Assembly: GCA_002269645.1 (NCBI GenBank)
Contig: NIVC01000618.1
Coordinates: 62,001 to 126,000, forward strand
Length of the DNA: 64,000 nucleotides
From: Macrostomum lignano
Taxonomy: Eukaryota
Direction of reading: 5' to 3'
Shown: in pieces, positions 1-36,789 of the stretch
Layout: every line of letters begins with the position of its first letter
How positions within the stretch are numbered: position 1 is the first letter of the stretch
Notes under the pieces: generated by a model
The model's database searches: none
What the model was told of the DNA's origin: nothing
Seen by the model: only the letters and a program-made list of their open reading frames with translations
Program-made: the position numbers and the translations under genes

Positions 1-124
1 GCATGATTTCAAACCCGTGATTTCGTATAAAATTCGACTAGAGTTCGGGTGAAGGGGTTAGCGACAAGGTGGCAGCGCATTGAGGACTTTATTATGCTAG
101 AAGGACCTGGGCTCGACTCCAAAT

Positions 125-545
125 GTCAGGGGCACCAAATGAGGTGTCAGGTGAACCAAATCAAATGTCAGGTGAGCCAAATTAAATGTCAGGTGAACCA
201 AATGAGGTGTCAGGGGGAGCCAAATGAAGTGTCAGGGGAGCCAAATGAGGTGTCAGGGGAGCCAAATGAGGTGTCAGGGGAGCCAAATGAGGTGTCAGGG
301 GGAGCCAAATGAGGTGTCAGGGGAGCCAAATCAAATGTCAGGTGAGCCAAATCAAGTGTCAGATGAGCCAAATTAAATGTCAGGTGAACCAAATCAAATG
401 TCAGGGGAGCCAAATCAAATGTCAGGTGAGCCAAATGAGGTGTCAGGGGAGCCAAATGAGGTGTCAGGGGAGCCAAATGAGGTGTCAGGGGAGCCAAATG
501 AGGTGTCAGGGGGAGCCAAATGAGGTGTCAGGGGAGCCAAACCAG
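125..545. repeat. 21-bp minisatellite (aaatgaggtgtcaggggagcc); duplicate at ~9159-9579
   Basis: Direct tandem periodicity. Confidence 0.95.
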
Positions 546-587
546 ATGTGGGATTGCAGAGTGCTAAAATCCGAGCTCCCAACTCAC

Positions 588-1078
588 AGGCGTTCCGGTG
601 GCCAGTGTCGAACGGCAGCCAGTCGGTGAAGGCGCCAACAAAGCCGGCGGCAGTGCGAGCGGCCACGCGGACAAGAAACCGCCGCTTAGCAGGCAGGCCC
701 GGCGGCAGCTGGCATTCAAGGCCGGCCACGGTCAGCAGCCGCTGTTCATTGTTGTCGTCGTCATCTTCAACGGTTGCAGCCGGTCGATAAGCGACAATAT
801 AGTCGGCAATCTCGGAGTCGGCCGCAGACTGTGGCGGTTGCCAGGCAACGTGCACAACGCCGTCTCGAGACCAGGCGGTGAGGCCGGACGGCGGAGCGAT
901 ATTAGGTTGGCCGAGGCCGATTACTAGGCTGGCCGACGGGGAGAACCGGCCGTCCGGGCCAAGGATTCTAGCCGACAGGCGATTCGTCGAGCGGCCGATG
1001 GGCAGATCGGCCAATGTGGCCGAGCAGCTGGCCGAGGTGACGGCCGGGCCGCTGCTGGGTGGAGGCTGAAGTCGCAGT
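588..1078 (-). CDS. Duplicate FN3 exon (copy 1)
   Basis: Identical to 9622-10112, with splice sites intact. Confidence 0.88.
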
Positions 1079-4000
1079 CTAGAAGGGAGAAAGTGTAAGC
1101 GTTTGAACTGATGAAGACCGCGAACGTCTATCAGCTGATGATAAGCACAGATGCTTCAGTGGGTGACTACACCCCTACCGGATGCTTCAGTGGGTGACTC
1201 CACCCCTACCGGATGCTTCAGTGGGTGACTCCACCCCTACCGGATGCTTCAGTCAGTGTGTGACTCCACCCCTACCGGATGCTTCAGTGGGTGACTCCAC
1301 CCCTACCGGATGCTTCAGTGGGTGACTCCACCCCTACCGGATGCTTCAGTGGGTGACTCCACCCCTACCGGATGCTTCAGTGGGTGACCACCCCTACCGG
1401 ATGCTTCAGTGGGTGACTCCAACCCTACCGGATGCTTCAGTGGGTGACTCTACCCCTACCGGATGCTTTATTGGGTGAAATCAAAGGTTTCAATGCTTGT
1501 AAAAGTCAGGTTTAAGTTCAGCTTTTTGTTGTCCAACCAATGTCGGAATGAACAAAATAAAGACGTGGCTGGTGGCCGGCACACAGGCAGGAGGGCACAG
1601 ATAAATGGCAGTGTGGGAAATCTCCCTGAAGGGACCGCAGCCGCTACCCCCTCTCCTTGCCCTGTGCCACCGGAAACCGGCATTATTTCCTCATTTTCCA
1701 CTTTCCCGCCAGCGCGACCCGGCCGAGCCCACAGAAACTCGACGCCAATCTGGCTGGGAATTTTATCCCATCCCCAACCCCCACTTCACTCCCCGCTCAG
1801 CCAAGCGCTCAATAATTCTCTAGCCCCACTAGTCTCGGGCCTCCCAAATCACTTGAAGTCGATTTAGCTGCAACCATATCAGGCTGCAATGGCAGCAGAA
1901 ACACTGCTAGCTTTGGTTTATCGCAATCAATTTCTCCCTACCACCCCCTGTTTTCCCCAGATTCCTTCATCAACCATCTAATTTCCACTCAAGCAGCCAG
2001 CTCAATGCTCTCCAGTATGGGGGATTTCGAAAACGGAGACAGATACAAGGAGATGGGCGCACTGGGCCGCAACAACAGGACATTGCTGGACATGCGCTAG
2101 TGGGTATTTAATGAAAGGCGTGCGCCTTATCTAGCAGCAGCAGGGCATTAGTTTTGTAGGGGGGGGGGGGGAGGGGTCGAATGTAAAAATGCAAGCGGCT
2201 GCAAAATATGCGACCTTCGGGTCTCAAGTGGGATTTCCTGGCTTACTGAATTAGTAAGCATGTCAAGACTAGGGAAGATCCCTACATATGATTTAGACTG
2301 TAACTAATATCCGAGCTATTCCATTCTGGTAACATGGAGCGATTCTTCTAGCAGGTCAAGGGCGATTCTTCTAGCAGGTCAAGGGCGATTCTTCTAGCAG
2401 GTCAAGGGCGATTCTTCTAGCAGGTCAGGGGCGATTCTTCTAGCAGATCAAGGGCGATTCTTCTAGCAGATCCAGGGCGATTCTTCTAACAGGTCAAGGG
2501 CGATTTTTCTAGCAGGTCAAGGGCGATTCTTCTAGCAGGTCAGGGGCGATTCTTCTAGCAGATCAAGGGCGATTCTTCTAGCAGATCCAGGGCGATTCTT
2601 CTAGCAGATCAAGGGCGATTCTTCTAGCAAGTCAAGGGCGATTCTTCATTCTTCTAGCAGGTCAGGGGCGATTCTTCTAGCAGATCAAGGGCGATTCTTC
2701 TAGCAGATCAAGGGCGATTCTTCTAGCAGATCAAGGGCGATTCTTCTAGCAAGTCAAGGGCGATTCTTCAATCTTCTAGCAGATCAAGGGCGATTTTTCT
2801 AGCAGATCAAGGGCGATTTTTCTAGCAGATCAAGGGCGATTTTTCTAGCAGATCAAGGGCGATTCTTCTAGCAGATCAAGGGCGATTCTTCTAGCAGATC
2901 AAGGGCGATTCTTCTAGCAGATCAAGGGTGATTCTTCTAGCAGATCAAGGGCGATTCTTCTAGCAGATCAAGGGCGATTCTTCTAACAGGTCAAGGGCGA
3001 TTTTTCTAGCAGGTCAAGGGCGATTCTTCTAGCAGATCAAGGGCAATTCTTCTAGCAGATCAAGGGTGATTCTTCTAGCAGGTCAAGGGCGATTCTTCTA
3101 GCAGATCAAGGGCGATTTATCTAGCAGGTCAAGGGCGATTCTTCTAGCAGATCAAGGGTGATTTTTCTAGCAGGTCAAGGGCGATTCTTCTAGCAGATCA
3201 AGGGTGATTTTTCTAGCAGGTCAATGGCGATTTTGTCAGCCCCAGAAAGACAAAGGACACAAAGATATAATTATATATAGTTACTCACTCAATTCTCAAG
3301 CAGGTGGCCGGCTCCGGCCGGTCCCAGCCGACTCGGACAGTCCGGCCAGCAGTCTCGGACAAAATACGCAGGTTAATCAAGCGATGCGGCGCTGAGAAGA
3401 GGAGAAGAATTGACAAAGGGATCGGAGATCAGGCGTGTTTCATTGGGCTACAATATGAAAAAAATAAGTGAGAACAGGTAAGTGTAATTAATAACTCACC
3501 TGCATTCAGATGACCATCGGGTAAGCTTCGCCGCAAACGCTGGTTGCCATGCCGCCACCTGAGAATAGTGAGTATTCGTCCAGCATCACTAACTGTAACA
3601 CCACTGACTACTACTACAGCCTCGACAGTTAATACTGCGATAATTAGCCAGCAATAAGTCTTTGTAGAATCTGCATGCATAGCAAATCCTTGTTGAAACT
3701 ATGTAGTTTAATTGCCAATATTAATATAGATACAATGCTATGCTAGCAGCATGTTAATTCAAGAAATAAAGATAAAAATAACAGTGAATCTCCTATTGAG
3801 GATAAATAGTCAAGTTTTAGGAGGAAATCTTAGAGGCTTATAGAGGTTGAGAGAGAGAGAGAGCGGGTCGGAGGCTGCCCCTCTCTTAACGATTGCGTGT
3901 TGGTCCAATTCCAAAAACAGAAGCAACCAAACCCAGTAAGTCGAATCAGCCAATGACAGAAAGCCAAGGATTTGCGCGTACGCTTCTCTCCAACTCTCCA

Positions 4001-7000
4001 ACTGGCCCAGGGCGATGGGGGGTTGGAGGGAGGTGGCAAAGCATTGGCCGACTGGGCAGGGGAACAGATGCGTCACTTCATCAATGCAGTTGGCCAAGTT
4101 CAATACCTCAGACTTGTTAGTTTACTTAAGCTGGCCAATCCTCCCCGTGTATGGCCCCACCGGCCTCTAATGGGAGATAGATGGGAGCAGTATAAGCATT
4201 GGGATTCCGTGGGTTTGATTAGGGCGATTCTCTGTGCTGGATTAGGGCGATTCTCTGTGCTACATTAGGGCGATTCTCTGTGCTACATTAGGGCGATTCT
4301 CTGTGCTGGATTAGGGCGATTCTCTGTGCTGGATTAGGGCGATTCTCTGTGCTGGATTAGGGCGATTCTCTGTGCTACATTAGGGCGATTCTCTGTGCTA
4401 CATTAGGGCGATTCTCTGTGCTGGATTAGGGCGATTCTCTGTGCTGGATTAGGGCGATTCTCTGTGCTGGATTAGGGCGATTCTCTGTGCTACATTAGGG
4501 CGATTCTCTGTGCTGGATAAGGGCGATTCTCTGTGCTGGATTAGGGCGATTCTCTGTGCTGGATTAGGGCGATTCTCTGTGCTGGATTAGGGCGATTCTC
4601 TGTGCTGGATTAGGGCGATTCTCTGTGCTGGATTAGGGCGATTCTCTGTGCTGGATTAGGGCGATTCTCTGTGCTGGATTAGGGCGATTCTCTGTGCTAC
4701 ATTAGGGCGATTCTCTGTGCTGGATTAGGGCGATTCTCTGTGCTGGATTAGGGCGATTCTCTGTGCTGGATTAGGGCGATTCTCTGTGCTGGATTAGGGC
4801 GATTCTCTGTGCTGGATTAGGGCGATTCTCTGTGCTACATTAGGGCGATTCTCTGTGCTGGATTAGGGCGATTCTCTGTGCTGGATTAGGGCGATTCTCT
4901 GTGCTGGATTAGGGCGATTCTCTGTGCTACATTAGGGCGATTCTCTGTGCTGGATTAGGGCGATTCTCTGTGCTGGATTAGGGCGATTCTCTGTGCTGGA
5001 TTAGGGCGATTCTCTGTGCTACATTAGGGCGATTCTCTGTGCTGGATTAGGGCGATTCCTTGGGTGGATTAGGGCGATTCTCTGTGCTGGATTAGGGCGA
5101 TTCTCTGTGCTGGATTAGGGCGATTCTCTGTGCTGGATTAGGGCGATTCTCTGTGCTGGATTAGGGCGATTCTCTATGCTGGATTAGGGCAATTCTCTGT
5201 GCTGGATTAGGGCGATTCTCTGTGCTGGATTAGGGCGATTCTCTATGCTGGATTAGGGCTATTCTCTATGCTGGATTAGGGCGATTCTCTGGGTGGATTA
5301 GGGCGATTCTATGTGCTGGATTAGGGCAATTCTCTGTGCTGGATTAGGGGCGATTCTCCGGAGAGAGATCGCCCTCAGGAAGAAAAATCTCACGGCAAAA
5401 ACGATTACATGTAGGAGAGAGCGAGATTACAGAGCGTAATTGTGAGCAAAAATGTGATTAGATTAGTAATACTGTTCTTACCTGTCACCCATTGCTGTAG
5501 AGGTAGCTTGAGTTGCCGTCAAGCCAGTAGCCCAAGTCAGCAGACACGGCACTTTGTCAGCATTAGAATTGCTGCCATCTTCTGCAAGCAAATACGGTAC
5601 CAACAGAAAATACAGTAGGCTTGATTTCTGCAACATCTGCTACCACATCGCTTTTTTGCAATTCCAAAAATTCCAATTGTTGATTTTTTGACGCAGTTCT
5701 GTCAAAAAGAAAAGACCCAGGGGCCTGACAGAAAGTTCCTGATCGAGAGGAAAAGGAAGAGTAGAAAAGCGTTGCCAGGCATTGGAACTCGGGATTCTAG
5801 CCGAGTGTGAAAAACCACTGTATTCTTTTTCAACACGTGAAAAAAATATGAACTAGCTTCTGTTGCTGGCTAAACAACAGGAAATGTTGATGGCACTGGT
5901 AAAATTGAGAAAAAATCACGTACAGAACTTTCACAACACTGACAACAAAACAAAAAAACAGCCAGAGATCCTTGACAACACATTTAGACACTCTTGACAA
6001 TAGTCAGATATACTCTTGACAATAGTGAGATATACTCTTGACAATAGTGAGATATACTCTTGACAATAGTCAGATATACTCTTGACAATAGTGAGATATA
6101 CTCTTGACAATAGTCAGATATACTCTTGACAATAGTCAGATATACTCTTGACAATAGTCAGATATACTCTTGGCAATAGTCAGATATACTCTTGACAATA
6201 GTCAGATATACTCTTGACAATAGTCAGATATACTCTTGACAATAGTCAGATATACTCTTGACAATAATCAGATATACTCTTGACACAAAAGTCAGATATA
6301 CTCTTGACAATAGTCAGATATACTCTTGACACAATAGTCAGATATACTCTTGACACAATAGTCAGATATACTCTTGACAATAGTCAGATATACTCTTGGC
6401 AATAGTCAGATATACTCTTGACACAATAGTCAGATATACTCTTGACAATAGTCAGATATACTCTTGACAATAGTCAGATATACTCTTGACACAAAAGTCA
6501 GATATACTCTTGACAATAGTCAGATATACTCTTGGCAATAGTCAGATATACTCTTGACAATAGTCAGATATACTCTTGACAATAGTCAGATATACTCTTG
6601 GCAATAGTCAGATATACTCTTGACAATAGTCACATATACTCTTGACACAATAGTCAGATATACTCTTGACACAATAGTCAGATATACTCTTGACACAATA
6701 GTCAGATATACTCTTGACACAATAGTCAGATATACTCTTGACACAAAAGTCAGATATACTCTTGACACAAAAGTCAGATATACTCTTGGCAATAGTCAGA
6801 TATACTCTTGACACAATAGTCAGATATACTCTTGACAATAGTCAGATATACTCTTGACAATAGTCAGATATACTCTTGACACAATAGTCAGATATACTCT
6901 TGACAATAGTCAGATATACTCTTGACAATAGTCAGATATACTCTTGACACAATAGTCAGATATACTCTTGGCAATAGTCAGATATACTCTTGACAATAGT

Positions 7001-10000
7001 CAGATATACTCTTGACACAATAGTCAGATATACTCTTGACACAAAAGTCAGATATACTCTTGGCAATAGTCAGATATACTCTTGACAATAGTCAGATATA
7101 CTCTTGACACAAAAGTCAGATATACTCTTGGCAATAGTCAGATATACTCTTGACAATAGTCAGATATACTCTTGACACAAAAGTCAGATATACTCTTGGC
7201 AATAGTCAGATATACTCTTGACAATAGTCAGATATACTCTTGACAATAGTCAGATATACTCTTGGCAATAGTGAGATATACTCTTGACACAATAGTCAGA
7301 TATACTCTTGGCAATAGTCAGATATACTCTTGGCAATAGTCAGATATACTCTTGACAATAGTCAGATATACTCTTGACAATAGTCAGATATACTCTTGGC
7401 AATAGTCAGATATACTCTTGGCAATAGTCAGATATACTCTTGACAATAGTCAGATATACTCTTGACAATAGTCAGATATACTCTTGATCACACAAGCAAT
7501 TTCGCTACAACCCATTAAACCTACAGAAAATATATATGAAATGTTGCACCATGCCTTTACACTATGACAGACAGAACAGCAAACACACAGGCCGTAGTCG
7601 TTTAGATATTAGTAAAACAATTTTTTTACAATTGCAGAGGGTACAGCGCAGACACAGGCGCCCGACTGTCTGGTGGTGCGACACTCAGTCCAACAAAAAT
7701 AAATAGAAGAATTCAGGCTACACACAGCTTTGCCATCTATGAAGAAATTCCTGCCCGGATGTCGGCGAAGCAGACTTTCTATAGATATGTATGGCTGTTC
7801 AGCAAACAGTTTTCTTGTCCGTTGCAATGGCAATATAATATCTACTAGAAGAAATTAAAAGAATGAATCAGACTTTTGCCAATGGGCAAAGCCACTCTTA
7901 TAAGAATCATGCTACACAGGTACAGTTTTAGTAAGTGTATACTAGCATTATCCTTTTAACAAACGAATAGATGCATAGCTGGTTCATAGTGAGTGGGTAT
8001 TTCTGAGGTCACTCAATACCCACTTACTGAGTGGGTATTTCTTATCTCACCCCTGCAAGAGTGACCTCAGAACCTCGAAATCTCACCCCTGCAAGAGTGA
8101 CCTCAGAACCTCGAAATCTCACCCCTGCAAGAGTGACCTCAGAACCTCGAAATCTCACCCCTGCAAGAGTGACCTCAGAACCTCGAAATCTCACCCCTGC
8201 AAGAGTGACCTCAGAATCTCGAAATCTCACCCCTGCAAGAGTGACCTCAGAACCTCGAAATCTCACCCCTGCAAGAGTGACCTCAGAATCTCGAAATCTC
8301 ACCCCTGCAAGAGTGACCTCAGAATCTCGAAATCTCACCCCTGCAAGAGTGACCTCAGAATCTCGAAATCTCACCCCTGCAAGAGTGACCTCGGAACCTC
8401 GAAATCTCACCCCTGCAAGAGTGACCTCAGAACCCTGAAATTTCATCCGAAACCCCGAAATCTTACCCCCTAACCCTGAAATCTCATCCGAAACCCCGAA
8501 ATCTTACCCCCTTACCCTGAAATCTCATCCGAAACCCCGAAATCTCACCGAAGTCTCACCCCTAACCACGAAGTCTCACCCCTAACCCCGCAGTCACACC
8601 CCTGACCCTGAAATCTCACCCCTAATAACGAAATCTCACACTTATTCCGCAGTCTCACCCCTGACCCTGAAATCTCACCCCTAATAACGAAATCTCACAC
8701 TTATCCCGCAGTCTCACCCCTGACCCTGAAATCTCACCCCTAATAACGAAATCTCCACTTATCCCGCAGTCTCACCCCTGACCCTGAAATCTCACCCCTA
8801 ATAACGAAATCTCACACTTATCCCGCAGTCTCACCCCCGACCCTGAAATCTCACCCCTAATAACGAAATCTCACACTTATCCCGCAGTCTCACCCCTGAC
8901 CCTGAAATCTCACCCCTGGAAGGGTGTTAGCCCCACCCAGGCAATAAACAGAGGCAGCAAATGTTTTTATTGTTATTATCATAGCATCCTGTCTAGCGGG
9001 GACACGGCAATTCTAAACTGCTGCAATGCGTTCAGCATGATTTCAAACCCGTGATTTCGTATAAAATTCGACTAGAGTTCGGGTGAAGGGGTTAGCGACA
9101 AGGTGGCAGCGCATTGAGGACTTTATTATGCTAGAAGGACCTGGGCTCGACTCCAAATGTCAGGGGCACCAAATGAGGTGTCAGGTGAACCAAATCAAAT
9201 GTCAGGTGAGCCAAATTAAATGTCAGGTGAACCAAATGAGGTGTCAGGGGGAGCCAAATGAAGTGTCAGGGGAGCCAAATGAGGTGTCAGGGGAGCCAAA
9301 TGAGGTGTCAGGGGAGCCAAATGAGGTGTCAGGGGGAGCCAAATGAGGTGTCAGGGGAGCCAAATCAAATGTCAGGTGAGCCAAATCAAGTGTCAGATGA
9401 GCCAAATTAAATGTCAGGTGAACCAAATCAAATGTCAGGGGAGCCAAATCAAATGTCAGGTGAGCCAAATGAGGTGTCAGGGGAGCCAAATGAGGTGTCA
9501 GGGGAGCCAAATGAGGTGTCAGGGGAGCCAAATGAGGTGTCAGGGGGAGCCAAATGAGGTGTCAGGGGAGCCAAACCAGATGTGGGATTGCAGAGTGCTA
9601 AAATCCGAGCTCCCAACTCACAGGCGTTCCGGTGGCCAGTGTCGAACGGCAGCCAGTCGGTGAAGGCGCCAACAAAGCCGGCGGCAGTGCGAGCGGCCAC
9701 GCGGACAAGAAACCGCCGCTTAGCAGGCAGGCCCGGCGGCAGCTGGCATTCAAGGCCGGCCACGGTCAGCAGCCGCTGTTCATTGTTGTCGTCGTCATCT
9801 TCAACGGTTGCAGCCGGTCGATAAGCGACAATATAGTCGGCAATCTCGGAGTCGGCCGCAGACTGTGGCGGTTGCCAGGCAACGTGCACAACGCCGTCTC
9901 GAGACCAGGCGGTGAGGCCGGACGGCGGAGCGATATTAGGTTGGCCGAGGCCGATTACTAGGCTGGCCGACGGGGAGAACCGGCCGTCCGGGCCAAGGAT

Positions 10001-13000
10001 TCTAGCCGACAGGCGATTCGTCGAGCGGCCGATGGGCAGATCGGCCAATGTGGCCGAGCAGCTGGCCGAGGTGACGGCCGGGCCGCTGCTGGGTGGAGGC
10101 TGAAGTCGCAGTCTAGAAGGGAGAAAGTGTAAGCGTTTGAACTGATGAAGACCGCGAACGTCTATCAGCTGATGATAAGCACAGATGCTTCAGTGGGTGA
10201 CTACACCCCTACCGGATGCTTCAGTGGGTGACTCCACCCCTACCGGATGCTTCAGTGGGTGACTCCACCCCTACCGGATGCTTCAGTCAGTGTGTGACTC
10301 CACCCCTACCGGATGCTTCAGTGGGTGACTCCACCCCTACCGGATGCTTCAGTGGGTGACTCCACCCCTACCGGATGCTTCAGTGGGTGACTCCACCCCT
10401 ACCGGATGCTTCAGTGGGTGACCACCCCTACCGGATGCTTCAGTGGGTGACTCCAACCCTACCGGATGCTTCAGTGGGTGACTCTACCCCTACCGGATGC
10501 TTTATTGGGTGAAATCAAAGGTTTCAATGCTTGTAAAAGTCAGGTTTAAGTTCAGCTTTTTGTTGTCCAACCAATGTCGGAATGAACAAAATAAAGACGT
10601 GGCTGGTGGCCGGCACACAGGCAGGAGGGCACAGATAAATGGCAGTGTGGGAAATCTCCCTGAAGGGACCGCAGCCGCTACCCCCTCTCCTTGCCCTGTG
10701 CCACCGGAAACCGGCATTATTTCCTCATTTTCCACTTTCCCGCCAGCGCGACCCGGCCGAGCCCACAGAAACTCGACGCCAATCTGGCTGGGAATTTTAT
10801 CCCATCCCCAACCCCCACTTCACTCCCCGCTCAGCCAAGCGCTCAATAATTCTCTAGCCCCACTAGTCTCGGGCCTCCCAAATCACTTGAAGTCGATTTA
10901 GCTGCAACCATATCAGGCTGCAATGGCAGCAGAAACACTGCTAGCTTTGGTTTATCGCAATCAATTTCTCCCTACCACCCCCTGTTTTCCCCAGATTCCT
11001 TCATCAACCATCTAATTTCCACTCAAGCAGCCAGCTCAATGCTCTCCAGTATGGGGGATTTCGAAAACGGAGACAGATACAAGGAGATGGGCGCACTGGG
11101 CCGCAACAACAGGACATTGCTGGACATGCGCTAGTGGGTATTTAATGAAAGGCGTGCGCCTTATCTAGCAGCAGCAGGGCATTAGTTTTGTAGGGGGGGG
11201 GGGGGGAGGGGTCGAATGTAAAAATGCAAGCGGCTGCAAAATATGCGACCTTCGGGTCTCAAGTGGGATTTCCTGGCTTACTGAATTAGTAAGCATGTCA
11301 AGACTAGGGAAGATCCCTACATATGATTTAGACTGTAACTAATATCCGAGCTATTCCATTCTGGTAACATGGAGCGATTCTTCTAGCAGGTCAAGGGCGA
11401 TTCTTCTAGCAGGTCAAGGGCGATTCTTCTAGCAGGTCAAGGGCGATTCTTCTAGCAGGTCAGGGGCGATTCTTCTAGCAGATCAAGGGCGATTCTTCTA
11501 GCAGATCCAGGGCGATTCTTCTAACAGGTCAAGGGCGATTTTTCTAGCAGGTCAAGGGCGATTCTTCTAGCAGGTCAGGGGCGATTCTTCTAGCAGATCA
11601 AGGGCGATTCTTCTAGCAGATCCAGGGCGATTCTTCTAGCAGATCAAGGGCGATTCTTCTAGCAAGTCAAGGGCGATTCTTCATTCTTCTAGCAGGTCAG
11701 GGGCGATTCTTCTAGCAGATCAAGGGCGATTCTTCTAGCAGATCAAGGGCGATTCTTCTAGCAGATCAAGGGCGATTCTTCTAGCAAGTCAAGGGCGATT
11801 CTTCAATCTTCTAGCAGATCAAGGGCGATTTTTCTAGCAGATCAAGGGCGATTTTTCTAGCAGATCAAGGGCGATTTTTCTAGCAGATCAAGGGCGATTC
11901 TTCTAGCAGATCAAGGGCGATTCTTCTAGCAGATCAAGGGCGATTCTTCTAGCAGATCAAGGGTGATTCTTCTAGCAGATCAAGGGCGATTCTTCTAGCA
12001 GATCAAGGGCGATTCTTCTAACAGGTCAAGGGCGATTTTTCTAGCAGGTCAAGGGCGATTCTTCTAGCAGATCAAGGGCAATTCTTCTAGCAGATCAAGG
12101 GTGATTCTTCTAGCAGGTCAAGGGCGATTCTTCTAGCAGATCAAGGGCGATTTATCTAGCAGGTCAAGGGCGATTCTTCTAGCAGATCAAGGGTGATTTT
12201 TCTAGCAGGTCAAGGGCGATTCTTCTAGCAGATCAAGGGTGATTTTTCTAGCAGGTCAATGGCGATTTTGTCAGCCCCAGAAAGACAAAGGACACAAAGA
12301 TATAATTATATATAGTTACTCACTCAATTCTCAAGCAGGTGGCCGGCTCCGGCCGGTCCCAGCCGACTCGGACAGTCCGGCCAGCAGTCTCGGACAAAAT
12401 ACGCAGGTTAATCAAGCGATGCGGCGCTGAGAAGAGGAGAAGAATTGACAAAGGGATCGGAGATCAGGCGTGTTTCATTGGGCTACAATATGAAAAAAAT
12501 AAGTGAGAACAGGTAAGTGTAATTAATAACTCACCTGCATTCAGATGACCATCGGGTAAGCTTCGCCGCAAACGCTGGTTGCCATGCCGCCACCTGAGAA
12601 TAGTGAGTATTCGTCCAGCATCACTAACTGTAACACCACTGACTACTACTACAGCCTCGACAGTTAATACTGCGATAATTAGCCAGCAATAAGTCTTTGT
12701 AGAATCTGCATGCATAGCAAATCCTTGTTGAAACTATGTAGTTTAATTGCCAATATTAATATAGATACAATGCTATGCTAGCAGCATGTTAATTCAAGAA
12801 ATAAAGATAAAAATAACAGTGAATCTCCTATTGAGGATAAATAGTCAAGTTTTAGGAGGAAATCTTAGAGGCTTATAGAGGTTGAGAGAGAGAGAGAGCG
12901 GGTCGGAGGCTGCCCCTCTCTTAACGATTGCGTGTTGGTCCAATTCCAAAAACAGAAGCAACCAAACCCAGTAAGTCGAATCAGCCAATGACAGAAAGCC

Positions 13001-16000
13001 AAGGATTTGCGCGTACGCTTCTCTCCAACTCTCCAACTGGCCCAGGGCGATGGGGGGTTGGAGGGAGGTGGCAAAGCATTGGCCGACTGGGCAGGGGAAC
13101 AGATGCGTCACTTCATCAATGCAGTTGGCCAAGTTCAATACCTCAGACTTGTTAGTTTACTTAAGCTGGCCAATCCTCCCCGTGTATGGCCCCACCGGCC
13201 TCTAATGGGAGATAGATGGGAGCAGTATAAGCATTGGGATTCCGTGGGTTTGATTAGGGCGATTCTCTGTGCTGGATTAGGGCGATTCTCTGTGCTACAT
13301 TAGGGCGATTCTCTGTGCTACATTAGGGCGATTCTCTGTGCTGGATTAGGGCGATTCTCTGTGCTGGATTAGGGCGATTCTCTGTGCTGGATTAGGGCGA
13401 TTCTCTGTGCTACATTAGGGCGATTCTCTGTGCTACATTAGGGCGATTCTCTGTGCTGGATTAGGGCGATTCTCTGTGCTGGATTAGGGCGATTCTCTGT
13501 GCTGGATTAGGGCGATTCTCTGTGCTACATTAGGGCGATTCTCTGTGCTGGATAAGGGCGATTCTCTGTGCTGGATTAGGGCGATTCTCTGTGCTGGATT
13601 AGGGCGATTCTCTGTGCTGGATTAGGGCGATTCTCTGTGCTGGATTAGGGCGATTCTCTGTGCTGGATTAGGGCGATTCTCTGTGCTGGATTAGGGCGAT
13701 TCTCTGTGCTGGATTAGGGCGATTCTCTGTGCTACATTAGGGCGATTCTCTGTGCTGGATTAGGGCGATTCTCTGTGCTGGATTAGGGCGATTCTCTGTG
13801 CTGGATTAGGGCGATTCTCTGTGCTGGATTAGGGCGATTCTCTGTGCTGGATTAGGGCGATTCTCTGTGCTACATTAGGGCGATTCTCTGTGCTGGATTA
13901 GGGCGATTCTCTGTGCTGGATTAGGGCGATTCTCTGTGCTGGATTAGGGCGATTCTCTGTGCTACATTAGGGCGATTCTCTGTGCTGGATTAGGGCGATT
14001 CTCTGTGCTGGATTAGGGCGATTCTCTGTGCTGGATTAGGGCGATTCTCTGTGCTACATTAGGGCGATTCTCTGTGCTGGATTAGGGCGATTCCTTGGGT
14101 GGATTAGGGCGATTCTCTGTGCTGGATTAGGGCGATTCTCTGTGCTGGATTAGGGCGATTCTCTGTGCTGGATTAGGGCGATTCTCTGTGCTGGATTAGG
14201 GCGATTCTCTATGCTGGATTAGGGCAATTCTCTGTGCTGGATTAGGGCGATTCTCTGTGCTGGATTAGGGCGATTCTCTATGCTGGATTAGGGCTATTCT
14301 CTATGCTGGATTAGGGCGATTCTCTGGGTGGATTAGGGCGATTCTATGTGCTGGATTAGGGCAATTCTCTGTGCTGGATTAGGGGCGATTCTCCGGAGAG
14401 AGATCGCCCTCAGGAAGAAAAATCTCACGGCAAAAACGATTACATGTAGGAGAGAGCGAGATTACAGAGCGTAATTGTGAGCAAAAATGTGATTAGATTA
14501 GTAATACTGTTCTTACCTGTCACCCATTGCTGTAGAGGTAGCTTGAGTTGCCGTCAAGCCAGTAGCCCAAGTCAGCAGACACGGCACTTTGTCAGCATTA
14601 GAATTGCTGCCATCTTCTGCAAGCAAATACGGTACCAACAGAAAATACAGTAGGCTTGATTTCTGCAACATCTGCTACCACATCGCTTTTTTGCAATTCC
14701 AAAAATTCCAATTGTTGATTTTTTGACGCAGTTCTGTCAAAAAGAAAAGACCCAGGGGCCTGACAGAAAGTTCCTGATCGAGAGGAAAAGGAAGAGTAGA
14801 AAAGCGTTGCCAGGCATTGGAACTCGGGATTCTAGCCGAGTGTGAAAAACCACTGTATTCTTTTTCAACACGTGAAAAAAATATGAACTAGCTTCTGTTG
14901 CTGGCTAAACAACAGGAAATGTTGATGGCACTGGTAAAATTGAGAAAAAATCACGTACAGAACTTTCACAACACTGACAACAAAACAAAAAAACAGCCAG
15001 AGATCCTTGACAACACATTTAGACACTCTTGACAATAGTCAGATATACTCTTGACAATAGTGAGATATACTCTTGACAATAGTGAGATATACTCTTGACA
15101 ATAGTCAGATATACTCTTGACAATAGTGAGATATACTCTTGACAATAGTCAGATATACTCTTGACAATAGTCAGATATACTCTTGACAATAGTCAGATAT
15201 ACTCTTGGCAATAGTCAGATATACTCTTGACAATAGTCAGATATACTCTTGACAATAGTCAGATATACTCTTGACAATAGTCAGATATACTCTTGACAAT
15301 AATCAGATATACTCTTGACACAAAAGTCAGATATACTCTTGACAATAGTCAGATATACTCTTGACACAATAGTCAGATATACTCTTGACACAATAGTCAG
15401 ATATACTCTTGACAATAGTCAGATATACTCTTGGCAATAGTCAGATATACTCTTGACACAATAGTCAGATATACTCTTGACAATAGTCAGATATACTCTT
15501 GACAATAGTCAGATATACTCTTGACACAAAAGTCAGATATACTCTTGACAATAGTCAGATATACTCTTGGCAATAGTCAGATATACTCTTGACAATAGTC
15601 AGATATACTCTTGACAATAGTCAGATATACTCTTGGCAATAGTCAGATATACTCTTGACAATAGTCACATATACTCTTGACACAATAGTCAGATATACTC
15701 TTGACACAATAGTCAGATATACTCTTGACACAATAGTCAGATATACTCTTGACACAATAGTCAGATATACTCTTGACACAAAAGTCAGATATACTCTTGA
15801 CACAAAAGTCAGATATACTCTTGGCAATAGTCAGATATACTCTTGACACAATAGTCAGATATACTCTTGACAATAGTCAGATATACTCTTGACAATAGTC
15901 AGATATACTCTTGACACAATAGTCAGATATACTCTTGACAATAGTCAGATATACTCTTGACAATAGTCAGATATACTCTTGACACAATAGTCAGATATAC

Positions 16001-19000
16001 TCTTGGCAATAGTCAGATATACTCTTGACAATAGTCAGATATACTCTTGACACAATAGTCAGATATACTCTTGACACAAAAGTCAGATATACTCTTGGCA
16101 ATAGTCAGATATACTCTTGACAATAGTCAGATATACTCTTGACACAAAAGTCAGATATACTCTTGGCAATAGTCAGATATACTCTTGACAATAGTCAGAT
16201 ATACTCTTGACACAAAAGTCAGATATACTCTTGGCAATAGTCAGATATACTCTTGACAATAGTCAGATATACTCTTGACAATAGTCAGATATACTCTTGG
16301 CAATAGTGAGATATACTCTTGACACAATAGTCAGATATACTCTTGGCAATAGTCAGATATACTCTTGGCAATAGTCAGATATACTCTTGACAATAGTCAG
16401 ATATACTCTTGACAATAGTCAGATATACTCTTGGCAATAGTCAGATATACTCTTGGCAATAGTCAGATATACTCTTGACAATAGTCAGATATACTCTTGA
16501 CAATAGTCAGATATACTCTTGATCACACAAGCAATTTCGCTACAACCCATTAAACCTACAGAAAATATATATGAAATGTTGCACCATGCCTTTACACTAT
16601 GACAGACAGAACAGCAAACACACAGGCCGTAGTCGTTTAGATATTAGTAAAACAATTTTTTTACAATTGCAGAGGGTACAGCGCAGACACAGGCGCCCGA
16701 CTGTCTGGTGGTGCGACACTCAGTCCAACAAAAATAAATAGAAGAATTCAGGCTACACACAGCTTTGCCATCTATGAAGAAATTCCTGCCCGGATGTCGG
16801 CGAAGCAGACTTTCTATAGATATGTATGGCTGTTCAGCAAACAGTTTTCTTGTCCGTTGCAATGGCAATATAATATCTACTAGAAGAAATTAAAAGAATG
16901 AATCAGACTTTTGCCAATGGGCAAAGCCACTCTTATAAGAATCATGCTACACAGGTACAGTTTTAGTAAGTGTATACTAGCATTATCCTTTTAACAAACG
17001 AATAGATGCATAGCTGGTTCATAGTGAGTGGGTATTTCTGAGGTCACTCAATACCCACTTACTGAGTGGGTATTTCTTATCTCACCCCTGCAAGAGTGAC
17101 CTCAGAACCTCGAAATCTCACCCCTGCAAGAGTGACCTCAGAACCTCGAAATCTCACCCCTGCAAGAGTGACCTCAGAACCTCGAAATCTCACCCCTGCA
17201 AGAGTGACCTCAGAACCTCGAAATCTCACCCCTGCAAGAGTGACCTCAGAACCTCGAAATCTCACCCCTGCAAGAGTGACCTCAGAACCTCGAAATCTCA
17301 CCCCTGCAAGAGTGACCTCAGAATCTCGAAATCTCACCCCTGCAAGAGTGACCTCAGAACCTCGAAATCTCACCCCTGCAAGAGTGACCTCAGAATCTCG
17401 AAATCTCACCCCTGCAAGAGTGACCTCAGAATCTCGAAATCTCACCCCTGCAAGAGTGACCTCAGAATCTCGAAATCTCACCCCTGCAAGAGTGACCTCG
17501 GAACCTCGAAATCTCACCCCTGCAAGAGTGACCTCAGAACCCTGAAATTTCATCCGAAACCCCGAAATCTTACCCCCTAACCCTGAAATCTCATCCGAAA
17601 CCCCGAAATCTTACCCCCTTACCCTGAAATCTCATCCGAAACCCCGAAATCTCACCGAAGTCTCACCCCTAACCACGAAGTCTCACCCCTAACCCGCAGT
17701 CACACCCCTGACCCTGAAATCTCACCCCTAATAACGAAATCTCACACTTATTCCGCAGTCTCACCCCTGACCCTGAAATCTCACCCCTAATAACGAAATC
17801 TCACACTTATCCCGCAGTCTCACCCCTGACCCTGAAATCTCACCCCTAATAACGAAATCTCCACTTATCCCGCAGTCTCACCCCTGACCCTGAAATCTCA
17901 CCCCTAATAACGAAATCTCACACTTATCCCGCAGTCTCACCCCCGACCCTGAAATCTCACCCCTAATAACGAAATCTCACACTTATCCCGCAGTCTCACC
18001 CCTGACCCTGAAATCTCACCCCTGGAAGGGTGTTAGCCCCACCCCAGACTCACCCAACTGCCCGGAACAATGCGACTCCAGCACCGCTTCTCTAGCAGAA
18101 GCGCCAGCATCGGTCAGTGGCAGCACCGTCAAGTCCCATCGGGCAACTACCATCAGCAGTTGACTAGCATCGACATCGTCGACAATCCAGCAGGTGTACA
18201 AGCCTGAGTCGGACAACTGCGCCGAGTTAATGATCAAACGAACTCCTGTCCTGCATCAGGGCAACAAAAGACAAATGCATCAATTAGGGCGAACACACAC
18301 AATGCAGGACTTTAATTGAAGCAAACACAAGAAACATATTGGCCGGCAAATGATGATTGATGCCAGTCATTAGCCTAGAAAAAGCACCCTATGCCGGTAC
18401 AAATCGCATAAAGGAAAGACCTGATTGAATGCCCTTTCACTGCCACCAATAATACGCTAATGAGTAAATCTCTCTAACTAGTTAAACGTATTCTAATACA
18501 CTATTAGAAACTTTCGTTCTTTAATCAATAAATAATATCACATAAATATCAGAATGCATGTTACAATTTTTTATCCTGCGTCAAAAATACGATTTGTTAA
18601 TTGCTAAACTGATGGCCTCTGGCTTGGTAAAGCAACAAGGAAAACCATGAGTTTTTTTGGAGGGGGTGGGTTAGTGCTATTTATACACACTGCTTGACCC
18701 AGCCAGACCTCCGCTTGACCCAGTCGGACCTCTGTTTGACCCAGTCGGACCTCTGCTTGACCCAGTCAGACCTTCGCTTGACCCAGTCAGACCTCCGCTT
18801 GACCCAGTCAGACCTCTGTTTGACCCACTCAGACCTCTGCTTGACCCAGTCAGACCTCTGCTTGACCTAGTCGGACCTCTGCTTGACCCACCCAGACCTC
18901 TGTTTGACCCACTCAGGCTTCTGTTTGACCCACTCAGGCTTCTGTTTGACCCACTCAGGCTTCTGTTTGACCCACTCAGGCTTCTGTTTGACCCACTCAG

Positions 19001-19543
19001 GCTTCTGTTTGACCCACTCAGGCTTCTGTTTGATCCACTCAGGCTTCTGTTTGACCCACTCAGACCTCGGTTTAACCCAATCAAACACATGCTTGACCCA
19101 CGCAGACCTCTGTTTGACCCAAACAGACACATTCTTGACCCACGCAGACCTCCACTGTCACTCAAAAAACTCACCTGACAATTTCACCGTCACGCAACCA
19201 TCGAATTCGACTAGAGTTGGTCACGTGACCGCAGGGCAGCGCAACAGACGAACTGACGGAAACTGCTAATGCAGCCTGTCTCAGTTTATTCAATCGGATT
19301 CGATCAGCTCGAACAGACACCAACTGATTTTTATTATCCAATTGTATAAGAAATGCACTGCGAAATTTAGTCTGACTAATCGCTTCAGTTGTTGATTGAC
19401 ACCAATAGTAGCCCGTCTGGTTATCTGGCGACTTGAGTTTTATAGCTAGCAACAAGTTTGGCAACTGCAGTTGATACAGACGACTGCTGAATATTGACTG
19501 AACAGGCACTGCGTTGTCTCTTCTGCTCCTGCTGTGCCACCAG
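588..19543 (-). CDS. Multi-exon Ig-superfamily / fibronectin type III protein (at least 2 Ig + 2 FN3 domains; 5' end not found; 3' block duplicated)
   Basis: GT-AG exons with compatible phases join to give WLRDGEIVR|TGVRLIINSAQLSDSGLYTCW (Ig I-set) and APHRLINLRILSETAGRTVRVGWDRPEPATCLRIE|LRLQ...ATLADLPIGRSTNRLSARILGPDGRFSPS...VHVAWQPP...IADYIVAYR...FLVRVAARTAAG (two FN3 domains). Confidence 0.85.
1155..1466. repeat. 31-bp minisatellite (ggatgcttcagtgggtgactccacccctacc); duplicate at ~10189-10500
   Basis: Direct tandem periodicity. Confidence 0.95.
2334..3230. repeat. 23-bp minisatellite (gggcgattcttctagcagatcaa); duplicate at ~11368-12265
   Basis: Direct tandem periodicity. Confidence 0.95.
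4219..5360. repeat. 23-bp minisatellite containing TTAGGG (gattagggcgattctctgtgctg); duplicate at ~13254-14395
   Basis: Direct tandem periodicity. Confidence 0.95.
5990..7487. repeat. 22/24-bp minisatellite (ctcttgac[ac]aatagtcagatata); duplicate at ~15025-16522
   Basis: Direct tandem periodicity with interleaved length variants. Confidence 0.95.
8045..8925. repeat. 36-bp minisatellite followed by a related ~59-bp derivative array; duplicate at ~17080-18030 (two extra 36-mers)
   Basis: ctcacccctgcaagagtgacctcagaacctcgaaat units, then gaaatctcacccct-based composite units. Confidence 0.95.
9622..10112 (-). CDS. FN3 exon (second half of FN3-1 plus complete FN3-2)
   Basis: Acceptor ctcccttctag, donor gtgagt, 491 nt, phase 2 to phase 1. 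FN3 W...Y...V-x-A...G pattern. Confidence 0.9.
12324..12426 (-). CDS. FN3 first-half exon; duplicate at 3289-3391
   Basis: Strong polypyrimidine acceptor (ttcttctcctcttctcag), donor gtgagt. Encodes APHRLINLRILSETAGRTVRVGWDRPEP. Confidence 0.85.
12535..12705 (-). CDS. Exon of the Ig/FN3 gene (phase 1-1, 171 nt); duplicate at 3500-3670
   Basis: Acceptor tgcag, donor cag|gtgagt. In frame with the following FN3 exon. Contains VSGVTVSDAG (degenerate Ig E-F strand motif). Confidence 0.65.
14517..14616 (-). CDS. Probable small exon of the Ig/FN3 gene; duplicate at 5482-5581
   Basis: Acceptor ttgcag, strong donor ag|gtaag, open frame EDGSNSNADKVPCLLTWATG. Phase linkage to the neighbouring exons is not fully resolved. 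Confidence 0.45.
16650..16879 (-). CDS. Probable exon of the Ig/FN3 gene (3' boundary uncertain); duplicate at ~7615-7844
   Basis: Acceptor ttcttctag in phase 1 continues the 18054 exon in frame (VDIILPLQRTRKLF...SIYFCW). Donor not resolved. Confidence 0.55.
18054..18250 (-). CDS. Ig-domain exon (D-S-G-x-Y-x-C motif)
   Basis: Acceptor tgcag, donor gtgagt. A phase-2 junction with 19175 gives RTGVRLIINSAQLSDSGLYTCW. Confidence 0.88.
18695..19150. repeat. 21-bp minisatellite (tgacccactcaggcttctgtt), intronic
   Basis: Direct tandem periodicity between exons 18250 and 19175. Confidence 0.92.
19175..19543 (-). CDS. Ig-domain exon (end of one Ig domain, start of the next)
   Basis: Acceptor tttctttag and donor gtgagt. 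Encodes WWH...TGYYWC...VALPCG...IRWLRDGEIV. Confidence 0.85.
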
Positions 19544-20389
19544 CTAAAGAAAGGAAAATTTATTAATTTAATAAAATTAATTAATGCATGATTTGATAAT
19601 AAACAATCAGAAAAACTTACACAACATTTGAAGTTAATGGACACTTGAGAATTATTGTGGCATTCAATGCAAAATTAGCAACTTGCAGTTGCCTTGCTGG
19701 CCTGGATAAATCTAAAAAGTCAAGTCAAGATCACTTTTTTGAAGTGAAATGCATTGAAAATCATAATTTAATGAATTCCAAAGTAGTCATTTAAAAAAGA
19801 AAACACTATAGCTAATACACTGTAACATTTGTTTGCCTCTGCTTTATAATTATTTTGATATAAATAAAACTGATTATAGATTATATTTTTAACTTTATGG
19901 CTGATTTTGGATTTCAATTTAGCAATTTATCTTGATTTGGCTTATCTTACATAATTTTTTTTTTAAATTTAAATAAATTTTAAATAATTTTTATTTTTAT
20001 TTATTTTTTTGTTTAGATTATGACAAATGCTTATGAACTACAAGATAGCCAAAAAAGCATTTCCTAGATAGTCTGTCTATATAGGTTAAACAAGCTGTTG
20101 CAACCCGCGGATTTTGAACCTGGGGAATTCCAATCCCCCAAACTAATTTTGCATATATTCTGAAGTCTAAAGCCATACACAAACAAAAACTTGTTAATAG
20201 TTAGTAGGATGGAGGTAGATATAAAATGGAGCACATTTGTGTAAAATTAGGGTTTGAGGCAAACATTTGATATTGTTGGTTGGGCCTGGGGTGCTGTGCA
20301 GAATGTCAGGCAATGTCTGTCTGACTCTAAAACATGTATTGGCAAACTCTGGCCTCTCCCTGACTCTCCCTATGTCCCTTGGATCCTTT

Positions 20390-24675: not shown

Positions 24676-26467
24676 CTTGTTGATAGTCAAGCTTCTTAAA
24701 CCTATTTCTTTTAAGCCATGCACTTTTTTTAGATTTTTACTAGGCTAGTCTACTAGGCTAGTTACTAACTAGGCTATATGTCATATTAGTTATATTGTTA
24801 TTGCTTATAAAAATAAAATATCTATAAATTAAGTAAACTTACCAAGAGATTTTTTAATCAATGAAATAAATATCCCATTGTTGTATTTAGCATTAGCAGC
24901 ATGTTTGGAGAAAAGACTGAGGGTAGACTCAGACAATGAAAGAAATGTGATAGCATTTAGAACTAGAAATGGAATTATTTTTAATATTCCAATCATCATT
25001 AGGCCTACTTAGCGTAATTTTTCTGTGCTTTACAGTTATGTATATAGTTTATTATATCCAAGTAAGTTTGGGCAAAGGAGGCCTTATATTTATTAGGAAT
25101 TTCTTTTCCATGTGCTAGGAGAGTTAGAGTATGTGTAGGCCCCTTTTGAGTTTCAACTTGAATGTTTTTCTGTTCAATAAAAAACAGAATGATTTTATTG
25201 TACAATATCTTGAGCAATATCGTTGCTATAACTATCTTTTATTACCTTCTTGATTAAGTCAAGCCAATATTCTACCTCAAGGATTTGATGACTTAGGTCT
25301 ATCTTAAAGGCCCTATAACTTATAAAAATAAAAATATGGATGACAGTCAATCCTCAAATAGCAGAAGTACCTGTCATCAGTTCGCAATATGAATGATAGC
25401 ACCGACCGTTAAATCCTATTGACTACGTACAGGTTCTATACTATTTTACCGATTGACGTTCACAAGTTCTGTTCCTAGTTTAAGTACTGTAACCATAAAC
25501 TATACTATATTGACTGGAACTGCCATGTTCCCAGAACAAAGAATTCTATCGTGTAGTTAAACTAGTGCGTTTATATTCTAAGAAACTAAAATTGATAAAC
25601 AAATTTATTTCCCATTATAAATCTTTTAGATACAGTACGTAAATACAAACATATAAATATTCGTTTTTTTAGTTTGTAACGCAAGGTTGTAGTCTACTAC
25701 TGAAAATTGAGTATACGAGTTCTTGGGGAGAAATCGCAATTGAAAACACTTCAAACTTTGTTCATTTGCATTCATTGCGATTGCATTTATTATGAATTTC
25801 GCTAGTGATGCTTAAATATGTATAAGAAGTATTAGAAAATATCCTCCCGTTTATTGATATTTCTTTGGCCGTTTAGAATGACTGCAGAGAACATTCTCTG
25901 CTGTCTGCTCTCAATTTGTTTTTGTCGGCCGAGCAGCCAAAGAAACAAATTATTCAAGTGTTTTGGCCATACCATAGTCCATATGGGGTACATGTATGTA
26001 ATGTTACGGAAATAAACGGATATACATGTATTTTATACTGCTCTTAACATTTTCTCGCTAAATCTCGTAAACTTTATGTCTTTCTTGTAAAATTTAGGCG
26101 GCAGGTTTTACGTCGTACCGAAAATATAATTTTCAACTACTTTGAAATATCGATTGTACATGTATTTATTGTTTTGGTAGGGGCGTACATGTATGAGGCA
26201 AGAAGACCAAAATGTTTTTCTTTTGGTACGACACTTGCATTTCTTAGTTTAGCTCTGTAGCTCTTGATACTGATCGTAGAGCTTTTTGTTTAGAAAATAA
26301 AACATTTGAAATTAGAATTACATCCCAAAACCCAAACATAATACATGTATGTGTATGCACGCGGTATGCACCATATGTACATAAAACATAAGAGAATTAT
26401 AATTGCGTCATGTAAAAATAAAAGAAGCTTCATGTCAAACGTACAAGAAGCGTCATTAAAAATGGTA

Positions 26468-27368: not shown

Positions 27369-27880
27369 TTACTTTCCGTAAAAGTTGAATGTGCAGTTGT
27401 GGAACTGACCACCACAGAGGCTTCTCGGCAGGTCTTGGCCGCCCTCGGGTGCTTTCATCAGCTCGCCTCTATCAGACCCAGTTGTCACACTTTCGATGGT
27501 GGATTCCGCATCGTCGTCAATCTTGGTGACTTTGGACCCATAGGCAGCCAGACAAGCGCTCATTCGGGCCACACAGTCCATGTCTCGCCGCTTGTATACA
27601 TCCACTGAGCTCGAATTCTTGTGTCCCGTCATTAGTGTAATCGCTTGATTATCGAAACCGGCCTTGGCCAAACAGTTCACCTAAGTTTCAGCAGTTGGGT
27701 AAGACAGTATTCTTACAGTTTTACTGAAGTGAGTAGGCCATGCAATCTTTACTCACCGTGGTTACTCGCACACAATGGTTGGTGTACTTCCGCTGCAGAG
27801 CCAGAGTCCACATATTTCTCCGCCAGGAATGTTTGCGTAGCGAATCATAGCTACTTTTCCTATTTGCACTCCGAATAGGA
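27369..27880 (-). mobile_element. Crypton-type tyrosine recombinase C-terminal remnant with a 76-nt spliceosomal intron (27681-27756)
   Basis: Splicing gives QRKYTNHCVRVTT|VNCLAKAGFDNQAITLMTGHKNSSSVDVYKRR...FHNCTFNF, containing the H-x-x-R, TGH and catalytic Y positions of YR/DUF3504-like proteins. The upstream frame is shifted and truncated. Confidence 0.8.
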
Positions 27881-35357: not shown

Positions 35358-35419
35358 TTTTTTTAAGCGTTTGAGAAATATGAAACCGTTACAAGACACA
35401 AAAGTACGAGTATAGTGCG

Positions 35420-36780: not shown

Positions 36781-36789
36781 AGGCCAGCC

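Follow-up and report, generated by a model that had tools for sequence, protein, structure and literature searches.

The window analyzed here is a 64,000-nt stretch of the Macrostomum lignano assembly Mlig_3_7 (GCA_002269645.1; NIVC01000618.1:62001-126000), and all positions refer to it unless another sequence is named. The gene under study is Mlig014023.g2 (hereafter g2), which lies on the minus strand, encodes the 1225-aa protein PAA79732.1, and contains, as assembled in this draft, a head-to-tail tandem duplication of ca. 9.1 kb. Its sister gene, Mlig014023.g1 (g1; PAA62084.1, 1226 aa), belongs to the same 90% protein cluster. An exhaustive protein search with the conceptual splice product matched a 672-aa M. 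lignano protein, and the 90% cluster of that protein holds both g1 and g2. A word-indexed protein search had returned no match for the exons encoding fibronectin type III (FN3) or immunoglobulin (Ig) domains, although these are 100% identical to PAA79732.1; that result was a false negative. Two further stretches were compared with the window: L001, a public stretch of Mlig_3_7 that carries the g2 locus and reaches 18.5 kb to the left of the window, and L002, the stretch that carries the g1 locus. L001 34999-1 is 100% identical to window positions 1-34999.

When joined, the window exons designated E0, E1, E2, E3, H, G', Fa, and F reproduced residues 1-522 of PAA79732.1 exactly, and polypyrimidine-AG acceptors and GTRAG donors were found throughout (Table 1). 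Judged from its sequence, PAA79732.1 appears to be a type-I membrane protein of the Ig/FN3 superfamily, in which a signal peptide is followed by two clear Ig domains, a stretch of no recognized class, ca. five FN3 domains, one transmembrane segment, and a tail rich in glutamine. Counting by eye yielded about two to three Ig and five FN3 domains, and one Ig and four FN3 stretches of the whole protein passed the Pfam thresholds. The second Ig domain, read across the E2/E3 splice, matched Pfam Ig_3 at 32.8 bits, and the FN3 sequence in exon F matched Pfam fn3 at 28-30 bits. Exon Fa and the first part of F form another FN3 domain by eye, a region in which Pfam made no call. Exons H and G' had zero Pfam matches; together they encode an unclassified segment of ca. 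50 residues that precedes the two FN3 domains of the block (FN3-1 and FN3-2). A single-sequence AlphaFold2 model of a 461-aa conceptual protein had a predicted local distance difference test (pLDDT) score of 35 and was unusable.

Two exon models were discarded. The first restricted the block to the 491-nt FN3 exon (phase 2 to phase 1), in which case including it twice would shift the frame; this model was dropped once a motif scan located exon Fa. The second featured a 135-nt exon G (12669-12535, with an upstream AG at 12669 and phase 1-1), which is open-reading; the annotated coding sequence (CDS) has H and the shorter G' in its place.

Self-BLAST of the window revealed a single direct repeat of 8.9 kb (1-8917 vs. 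9035-17964). In a piecewise ungapped comparison, the match extended from 1-8938 to 9035-18043, and the 8,938 bp compared contained zero substitutions and only three length differences. The first of these is a poly-G run at 2158/11193, which is G13 in the downstream copy (copy A) and G14 in the upstream copy (copy B). The second is a 36-bp minisatellite near 8303/17339, whose unit order is AAAABABBBCDE in copy A and AAAAAABABBBCDE in copy B; copy B thus has two more units (+72 bp). The third is a C-run at 8586, C4 in copy A and C3 in copy B. A global alignment in MAFFT had instead suggested 46-bp indels, nine variant swaps in a 23-bp minisatellite, and one single-nucleotide polymorphism; the ungapped comparison ruled these out as artefacts of gap placement. 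The homology ends at 8938 in copy A and at 18043/18044 in copy B, the latter point lying 10 nt beyond the donor (GTGAGT) of E3, the exon that ends at 18054.

Self-alignment of L001 placed the number of copies at the g2 locus at exactly two, head to tail and ca. 9.1 kb each. The 96 bp of copy A that fall outside the window are identical to window positions 8939-9034. Neither the window nor L001 contains any Ns. The duplicated span runs from 10 nt into the intron after E3 to 684 nt into the intron after F. Seven minisatellites with units of 20-59 bp occupy more than half of the unit and of its two introns, and the arrays are alike in both g2 copies with the exception of one array. A preliminary description of this DNA, made from the letters of the window, had already placed the junction at 8938/8939, had noted that it returns to the intron about 10 nt past the donor of the Ig exon at 18054, and had stated that the near-identical copies differ only in homopolymer length and repeat-unit number. 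Self-BLAST and the ungapped comparison bear out all three points. Its suggestion that more copies might lie to the left of position 1 is excluded by L001, in which copy A begins only 96 bp beyond the window.

Table 1. Coordinates of the features of the g2 locus in the window; a slash within a sequence marks a join or splice site, here and in the text.
Feature	Position	Strand	Remarks
E0, start codon and signal peptide	24843..24999	-	tblastn 100%
E1, start of Ig1	19621..19711	-	phase-1 acceptor, phase-2 donor; rebuilt CDS
E2, end of Ig1 and start of Ig2	19175..19543	-	phase 2 at both ends; rebuilt CDS
E3, end of Ig2 and 30 residues more	18054..18250	-	phase-1 donor; unduplicated; rebuilt CDS
G-rich 20/59-bp minisatellite	17538..18023 (copy A 8431-8917)	-	ca. 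20 nt past upstream breakpoint
Putative first block exon of the preliminary description	16665..16879 (copy A 7630-7844)	-	good acceptor; GTAAAA donor (no GTRAGT)
H, copy B	14517..14616	-	first coding exon of block; phase-1 acceptor ttgcag/AAGATGG, phase-2 donor
G', copy B	12535..12593	-	phase 2 to phase 1
Fa, copy B	12324..12426	-	N-terminal half of FN3-1; phase-1 acceptor, phase-2 donor
F, copy B	9622..10112	-	C-terminal half of FN3-1 and whole FN3-2; phase-2 acceptor, phase-1 GTGAGT donor leaving T
H, copy A	5482..5581	-	
G', copy A	3500..3558	-	identical to copy B
Fa, copy A	3289..3391	-	phase-1 acceptor at 3391
F, copy A	588..1078	-	next exon ca. 860 bp on, left of window
Copy B (upstream on gene strand)	8939..18043	-	9,105 bp; L001 16957-26061
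Copy A (downstream on gene strand)	1..8938	-	true start NIVC01000618.1:61905, 96 bp left of window; L001 26062-35095
Head-to-tail junction	8938..8939	-	gene strand ...CTCTGTTTATTGCCT/GGGTGGGGCTAACACCC...; no filler, no gap
Minisatellites of copy A	124-541, 1150-1478, 2339-3232, 4217-5358, 5990-7487, 8044-8445, 8431-8917		each with a copy B counterpart

The boundaries were defined on the gene strand. The unit starts at ...CAGTTGG/GTGAGTCTGG GGTGGGGC..., its two copies meet at ...TTTATTGCCT/GGGTGGGGC..., and it ends at ...TTTATTGCCT/CCAACTGG.... The 32-mer across the junction is CTCTGTTTATTGCCTGGGTGGGGCTAACACCC, and the two ancestral flanks are GGGTGAGTCTGGGGTGGGGC and TTTATTGCCTCCAACTGGTT. The microhomology at the junction amounts to 0-2 bp, as the joined ends have at most the dinucleotide CT in common. 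Upstream, the junction is bordered by 219 bp of unique sequence (8939-9157); downstream, a G-rich 20/59-bp minisatellite begins after ca. 20 nt, with a gene-strand G content of 41% and recurring relaxed G-quadruplex motifs. Open reading frames (ORFs) spanning the junction or exon E3 found no matches in look-ups of public assemblies. The E3 donor sits 10 nt upstream of the duplication boundary, and none of the exons and splice sites was damaged by the duplication.

The sister locus preserves the unduplicated state. In L002, g1 has one copy of the unit and no long internal repeat; both window copies align to the same L002 interval, in which both ancestral flanks are continuous at 100% identity. 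At g2, then, two adjacent direct copies are present with a single head-to-tail junction that is missing from the unduplicated arrangement. Over the ca. 3.8 kb of the unit that is unique DNA, eight substitutions separate g1 from g2 and zero separate the two g2 copies. Minisatellite lengths differ between g1 and g2 by up to dozens of units (e.g., 66 vs. 78 and 50 vs. 84), and both copies at the g2 locus have lengths of the g2 type. Because of the substitution counts (eight vs. zero) and the g2-type arrays, the notion that copy A is a misplaced segment of g1 is excluded, and the duplication is far younger than the split between g1 and g2. With respect to g1, the sole homeolog compared, copy A is therefore not a misplaced allele or homeolog; a third homeolog identical to g2 could still be its source.

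Some additional differences between the sister loci were recorded. The unique DNA of the duplicated unit is only ca. 0.2% different between g1 and g2. The g1 and g2 proteins have nine amino-acid differences within residues 18-178 (E0-E2) and zero within residues 179-826. This mosaic pattern of divergence suggests either recent gene conversion between the homeologs or a chimeric scaffold. The g1 intron after F holds a 6.8-kb insertion (L002 27555-34385) that is missing from g2, where its counterpart is the point at ca. 9125-9129. Its ends are direct repeats, identical to each other and at least 300 bp long, and it includes three long ORFs of 277, 558, and 1104 aa; a 5-bp overlap between the alignments on either side suggests that the target site was duplicated. 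From these features, it looks like a very young, full-length long terminal repeat (LTR) retrotransposon.

The consequence of the duplication for the protein depends on how the new exon-exon junction is read. Exons H, G', Fa, and F sum to 753 nt (251 codons) with a phase-1 acceptor and a phase-1 donor, as checked in the CDS against PAA79732.1, and the block was phase 1-1 and divisible by three in every exon model tried (753, 729, or 594 nt). With equal intron phases at its ends and a length that is a multiple of three, it is a phase-symmetric exon module, and the preliminary description was correct that the block is phase 1 at both ends (here, over the 753 nt of annotated exons H to F) and terminates at 9622/588 in a phase-1 GTGAGT donor. 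It was also correct that the block closes with FN3-FN3: the CDS reads an FN3 half (12426-12324), followed by its remainder and a full FN3 domain (10112-9622). The 3' boundary of the block coincides with the Pfam-defined end of FN3-2, while the 5' exons, H and G', are those without a Pfam match.

With the annotated acceptor, however, the frame across the new junction is closed. The 9622 donor leaves T and exon H starts with AA, so the codon formed when F of copy B is joined to H of copy A is TAA. The spliced product reads ...GHRNA and then TAA, with the stop at codon 523; the splice junction is CTGGCCACCGGAACGCCT/AAGATGGCAGCAATTCTA, also given as ...GGAACGCCT/AAGATGGCAGC... (stop). Four other acceptors would leave the frame open. 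Use of the Fa acceptor at 3391 creates TCG (Ser) and adds exactly FN3-FN3, i.e. 198 residues (...GGAACGCCT/CGCCGCATCGCTTGATTA, the Fa side being CGCCGCATCGC). Entry at 3634 into the unannotated long exon G gives TTA, and use of the second AG in the H acceptor, CAGAAG, gives TAT (...GGAACGCCT/ATGGCAGC). Finally, the acceptor at 7844, which the preliminary description had proposed, gives TTA.

That description had put the first exon of the block at 16879/7844, where the annotated block starts at H (14616/5581). The splice that it drew from 9622 to 7844 does have an AG followed by the open frame ...RNA-LDIILPLQR; the exon so entered is absent from the annotated CDS. Pfam detected no signal for the 16879 exon, whether it was searched by itself, spliced to E3, or as part of all non-repeat intron sequence translated in three frames. 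The earlier interpretation is therefore partly supported: the duplication, the phase symmetry, and the FN3-FN3 ending were right, and the first exon, and hence the open frame, were wrong.

If the duplicated allele were spliced like the single-copy gene, in which the E3 phase-1 donor pairs with the H acceptor, translation would end at the TAA at codon 523. The truncated product would end after FN3-2 and so lose three FN3 domains as well as the membrane anchor and tail; its transcript would probably be a target of nonsense-mediated decay, and g1, the near-identical sister gene, would compensate for the loss. From the sequence of the splice sites, a longer in-frame protein requires a non-default acceptor, namely 3391, 3634, or the second AG of H.

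The preliminary description had viewed the locus as a functional expansion of a domain array in progress, with both blocks in one ORF and a second FN3-FN3 module gained. The phase 1-1 symmetry of the block, its divisibility by three under all models tried, and the open frames available via the acceptors at 3391, 3634, and 7844 and the second AG of H are compatible with that view. Yet H, the acceptor that the annotated mRNA uses after a phase-1 donor, gives TAA at the new junction; the exon at 7844/16879 is outside the annotated CDS and has no domain signal; and the cluster contains no double-block protein. Furthermore, H and G' continue a segment begun in the unduplicated E3, such that a second copy of them may encode an incomplete domain. 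With one block in the annotated protein and TAA as the default junction codon, an expansion in progress was not borne out, and we consider a functional gain of this kind highly improbable. Domain-array expansion is here a possibility rather than an observation.

A real duplication could also leave the protein unchanged if each transcript included one block through skipping of the whole other block, in which case it would be a neutral variant. The annotated g2 mRNA is indeed full length with one block, and because the copies are identical, the same protein would arise from either. Against this, the splice sites of the four exons are strong and identical, so by default these exons would not be expected to be skipped, and the annotation cannot distinguish this outcome from a single-copy genome. 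Such skipping is accordingly rated as distinctly unlikely. Overall, the effect of the duplication is probably either neutral or truncating, and it is very improbable indeed that an expanded receptor is produced.

We regard it as probable, on the grounds of the assembled sequence, that the repeat is a very recent, genuine tandem duplication and that its junction exists in DV1 DNA. A fuller proposition, that this is a real, young, two-copy intragenic duplication of 9.1 kb in which default splicing truncates the protein and which originated by end joining or template switching, is also favored, with slightly less confidence. The junction joins unrelated sequences that have no shared repeat, and therefore an overlap assembler would need reads that bear the junction. 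Heterozygosity inside the subgenomes of DV1, which is inbred, is negligible (PMC10733133), and for this reason two alleles laid in series are an unlikely source of the copies.

The competing explanation is that the locus has one block and that the second was produced by Canu from noisy PacBio reads of a neopolyploid, minisatellite-rich genome, e.g. by expansion of a near-identical third homeolog or from a chimeric read. Mlig_3_7 was assembled with Canu from PacBio continuous long reads (CLR) and polished with Pilon, and 15% of it is simple and tandem repeat (PMC5730564). Several points count for an artefact of this type and weigh against the duplication as we read it. The duplication is read here from assembled sequence. 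The copies differ by just two homopolymer lengths and one minisatellite count, and homopolymer lengths (two of the three differences) are what residual PacBio CLR consensus error gives. The draft has a documented redundancy of 180-312 Mb (PMC5730564), some of its variants are reported to be wrongly expanded or collapsed, and chimeric scaffolds are reported to make up 36% of its length (PMC10733133). Three homeologous subgenomes are reported for M. lignano (PMC10733133), and only two loci (g1 and g2) were present in the examined 90% cluster. The RNA-guided annotation is of a single-block protein, and neither a truncated nor a double-block form occurs in the same 90% cluster. This last point weighs against a duplicated gene because a single-copy genome would give the same annotation; the single-block annotation can be accommodated by a single-copy genome, by skipping of a whole block, or by the aberrant mRNA being lost. 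Lastly, with regard to the truncation, both the splicing outcome and nonsense-mediated decay are what we infer from the analysis of the splice sites.

On the other side, a false overlap cannot yield a junction of two unrelated, unique sequences with 2 bp or less in common. A random library chimera of points 9 kb apart and in direct orientation is very unlikely, and both copies are of the g2 type, neither being of the g1 type. In most false duplications, the copies are set apart by an assembly gap or by sequence that lacks support (Ko et al. 2022, PMC9516828). The g2 copies resemble these in being adjacent and near-identical, in residing in a long-read draft, and in differing in the manner of sequencing errors. 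They are unlike them in that they abut directly, with no Ns and no intervening gap or unsupported sequence, and in that the junction is a specific join of unrelated sequences. An assembly artefact is consequently held to be unlikely, if appreciably less so than whole-block skipping. The preliminary description had posed the choice between a recent duplication and an artefact; the evidence leans to a real duplication.

If the duplication is real, it most likely originated in one very recent event whose two non-homologous breakpoints, 684 nt into the intron after F and 10 nt into the one after E3, were joined with 0-2 bp of microhomology. Either non-homologous end joining or a template switch could have produced it, the latter at a replication fork that had stalled at the G-rich minisatellite. 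The upstream breakpoint would be near an exon because this minisatellite begins just past the E3 donor, and its position would be unrelated to splicing. The lack of substitutions and the near absence of minisatellite change between the copies would be due to the recency of the event.

Intragenic tandem duplication of phase 1-1 exon modules (modular exon shuffling) is established for Ig/FN3 proteins. The g2 block is like such modules in that it is a head-to-tail exon block with a phase-1 acceptor and a phase-1 donor, has a length that is a multiple of three, and has a 3' end that coincides with the end of an FN3 domain. It differs in that, for all its phase compatibility, its new junction forms the codon TAA, and in that its 5' exon, H, is not at a recognizable domain boundary. 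No two-block transcript or protein is on record in the 90% cluster of g1 and g2. Matching intron phases are thus necessary and insufficient, because the split codon can be a stop.

Tandem exon duplication is also a source of mutually exclusive exons. As in those systems, the duplicated exons of g2 are identical and adjacent, and their double inclusion by default is not tolerated, a setting out of which mutually exclusive use can evolve. However, the unit in g2 is a four-exon block, and the barrier is a stop codon, not a frameshift, since the length of the block is a multiple of three.

The identity of the receptor was also considered. UniProt gives the automatic name "Netrin receptor DCC" to A0A267G3D6, and another record of the same gene is automatically named Dscam2-like. 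The best matches among solved structures were the membrane-proximal FN3 domains of neogenin and DCC (E = 5e-22 to 1e-18); the same FN3 stretch was also matched by titin, LAR-type phosphatases, and Dscam. DCC and neogenin have four Ig and six FN3 domains and conserved cytoplasmic P motifs. Like them, the g2 protein has a type-I membrane layout: Ig domains at the N-terminus, then serial FN3 domains, a single transmembrane segment, and a long tail. It differs in its domain composition, with ca. two to three Ig and five FN3 domains by eye (one and four by Pfam) compared to four and six, and the names are automatic.

The event itself is ordinary, being an intragenic tandem duplication in a difficult draft assembly; the twist is the stop codon at a phase-compatible junction. 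If real, it would show, at an age of zero, the initial step in the presumed growth of Ig/FN3 arrays, in a model animal that is amenable to transgenesis and that has an unduplicated sister gene as an internal control. A more far-reaching version can be formulated, in which the duplication is real and either segregating or fixed in DV1, representing an exon-block duplication at time zero whose fate is set by one split codon (by default, TAA) and not by intron phase, and in which minor use of the neighboring AG or of the Fa acceptor already yields a longer receptor. This version is improbable. Were it true, such minor acceptor use would give a receptor with seven rather than five FN3 domains, and the locus would be a live example of a new module moving from a nonsense allele to an alternative isoform. 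If the duplication is instead an artefact, it is another wrongly expanded segment of the draft and a warning for gene-family counts in M. lignano.

Other features were noted on the minus strand of the window. A gene for eIF3 subunit I (WD40) occupies 45738-49266, and its exons match an M. lignano UniRef protein exactly. At 39651-41207, a 519-aa open frame with an IBR domain (RBR-type E3 ligase) runs into a coding-looking repeat (...HSLYRHHIPYTGITFPIPAS...), and at 41846-43732 there is a 629-aa open frame that is rich in Q, A, and P and has zero Pfam matches. An SH3-encoding exon at 58940-59200 (Pfam SH3_9, E = 8e-15) belongs to a neighboring gene. Broken frames with a reverse-transcriptase RNase H domain (Pfam RT_RNaseH_2, E = 5e-9) were found at 35400-37980; by its sequence, this region is classified as a degraded pol remnant of an LTR retrotransposon, and it also occurs upstream of g1 at 97% identity (L002 647-3178). 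At 27372-27680, a 103-aa open frame weakly matches the tyrosine-recombinase C-terminus (Phage_integrase, E = 0.04) and may be the remnant of a Crypton- or DIRS-type element.

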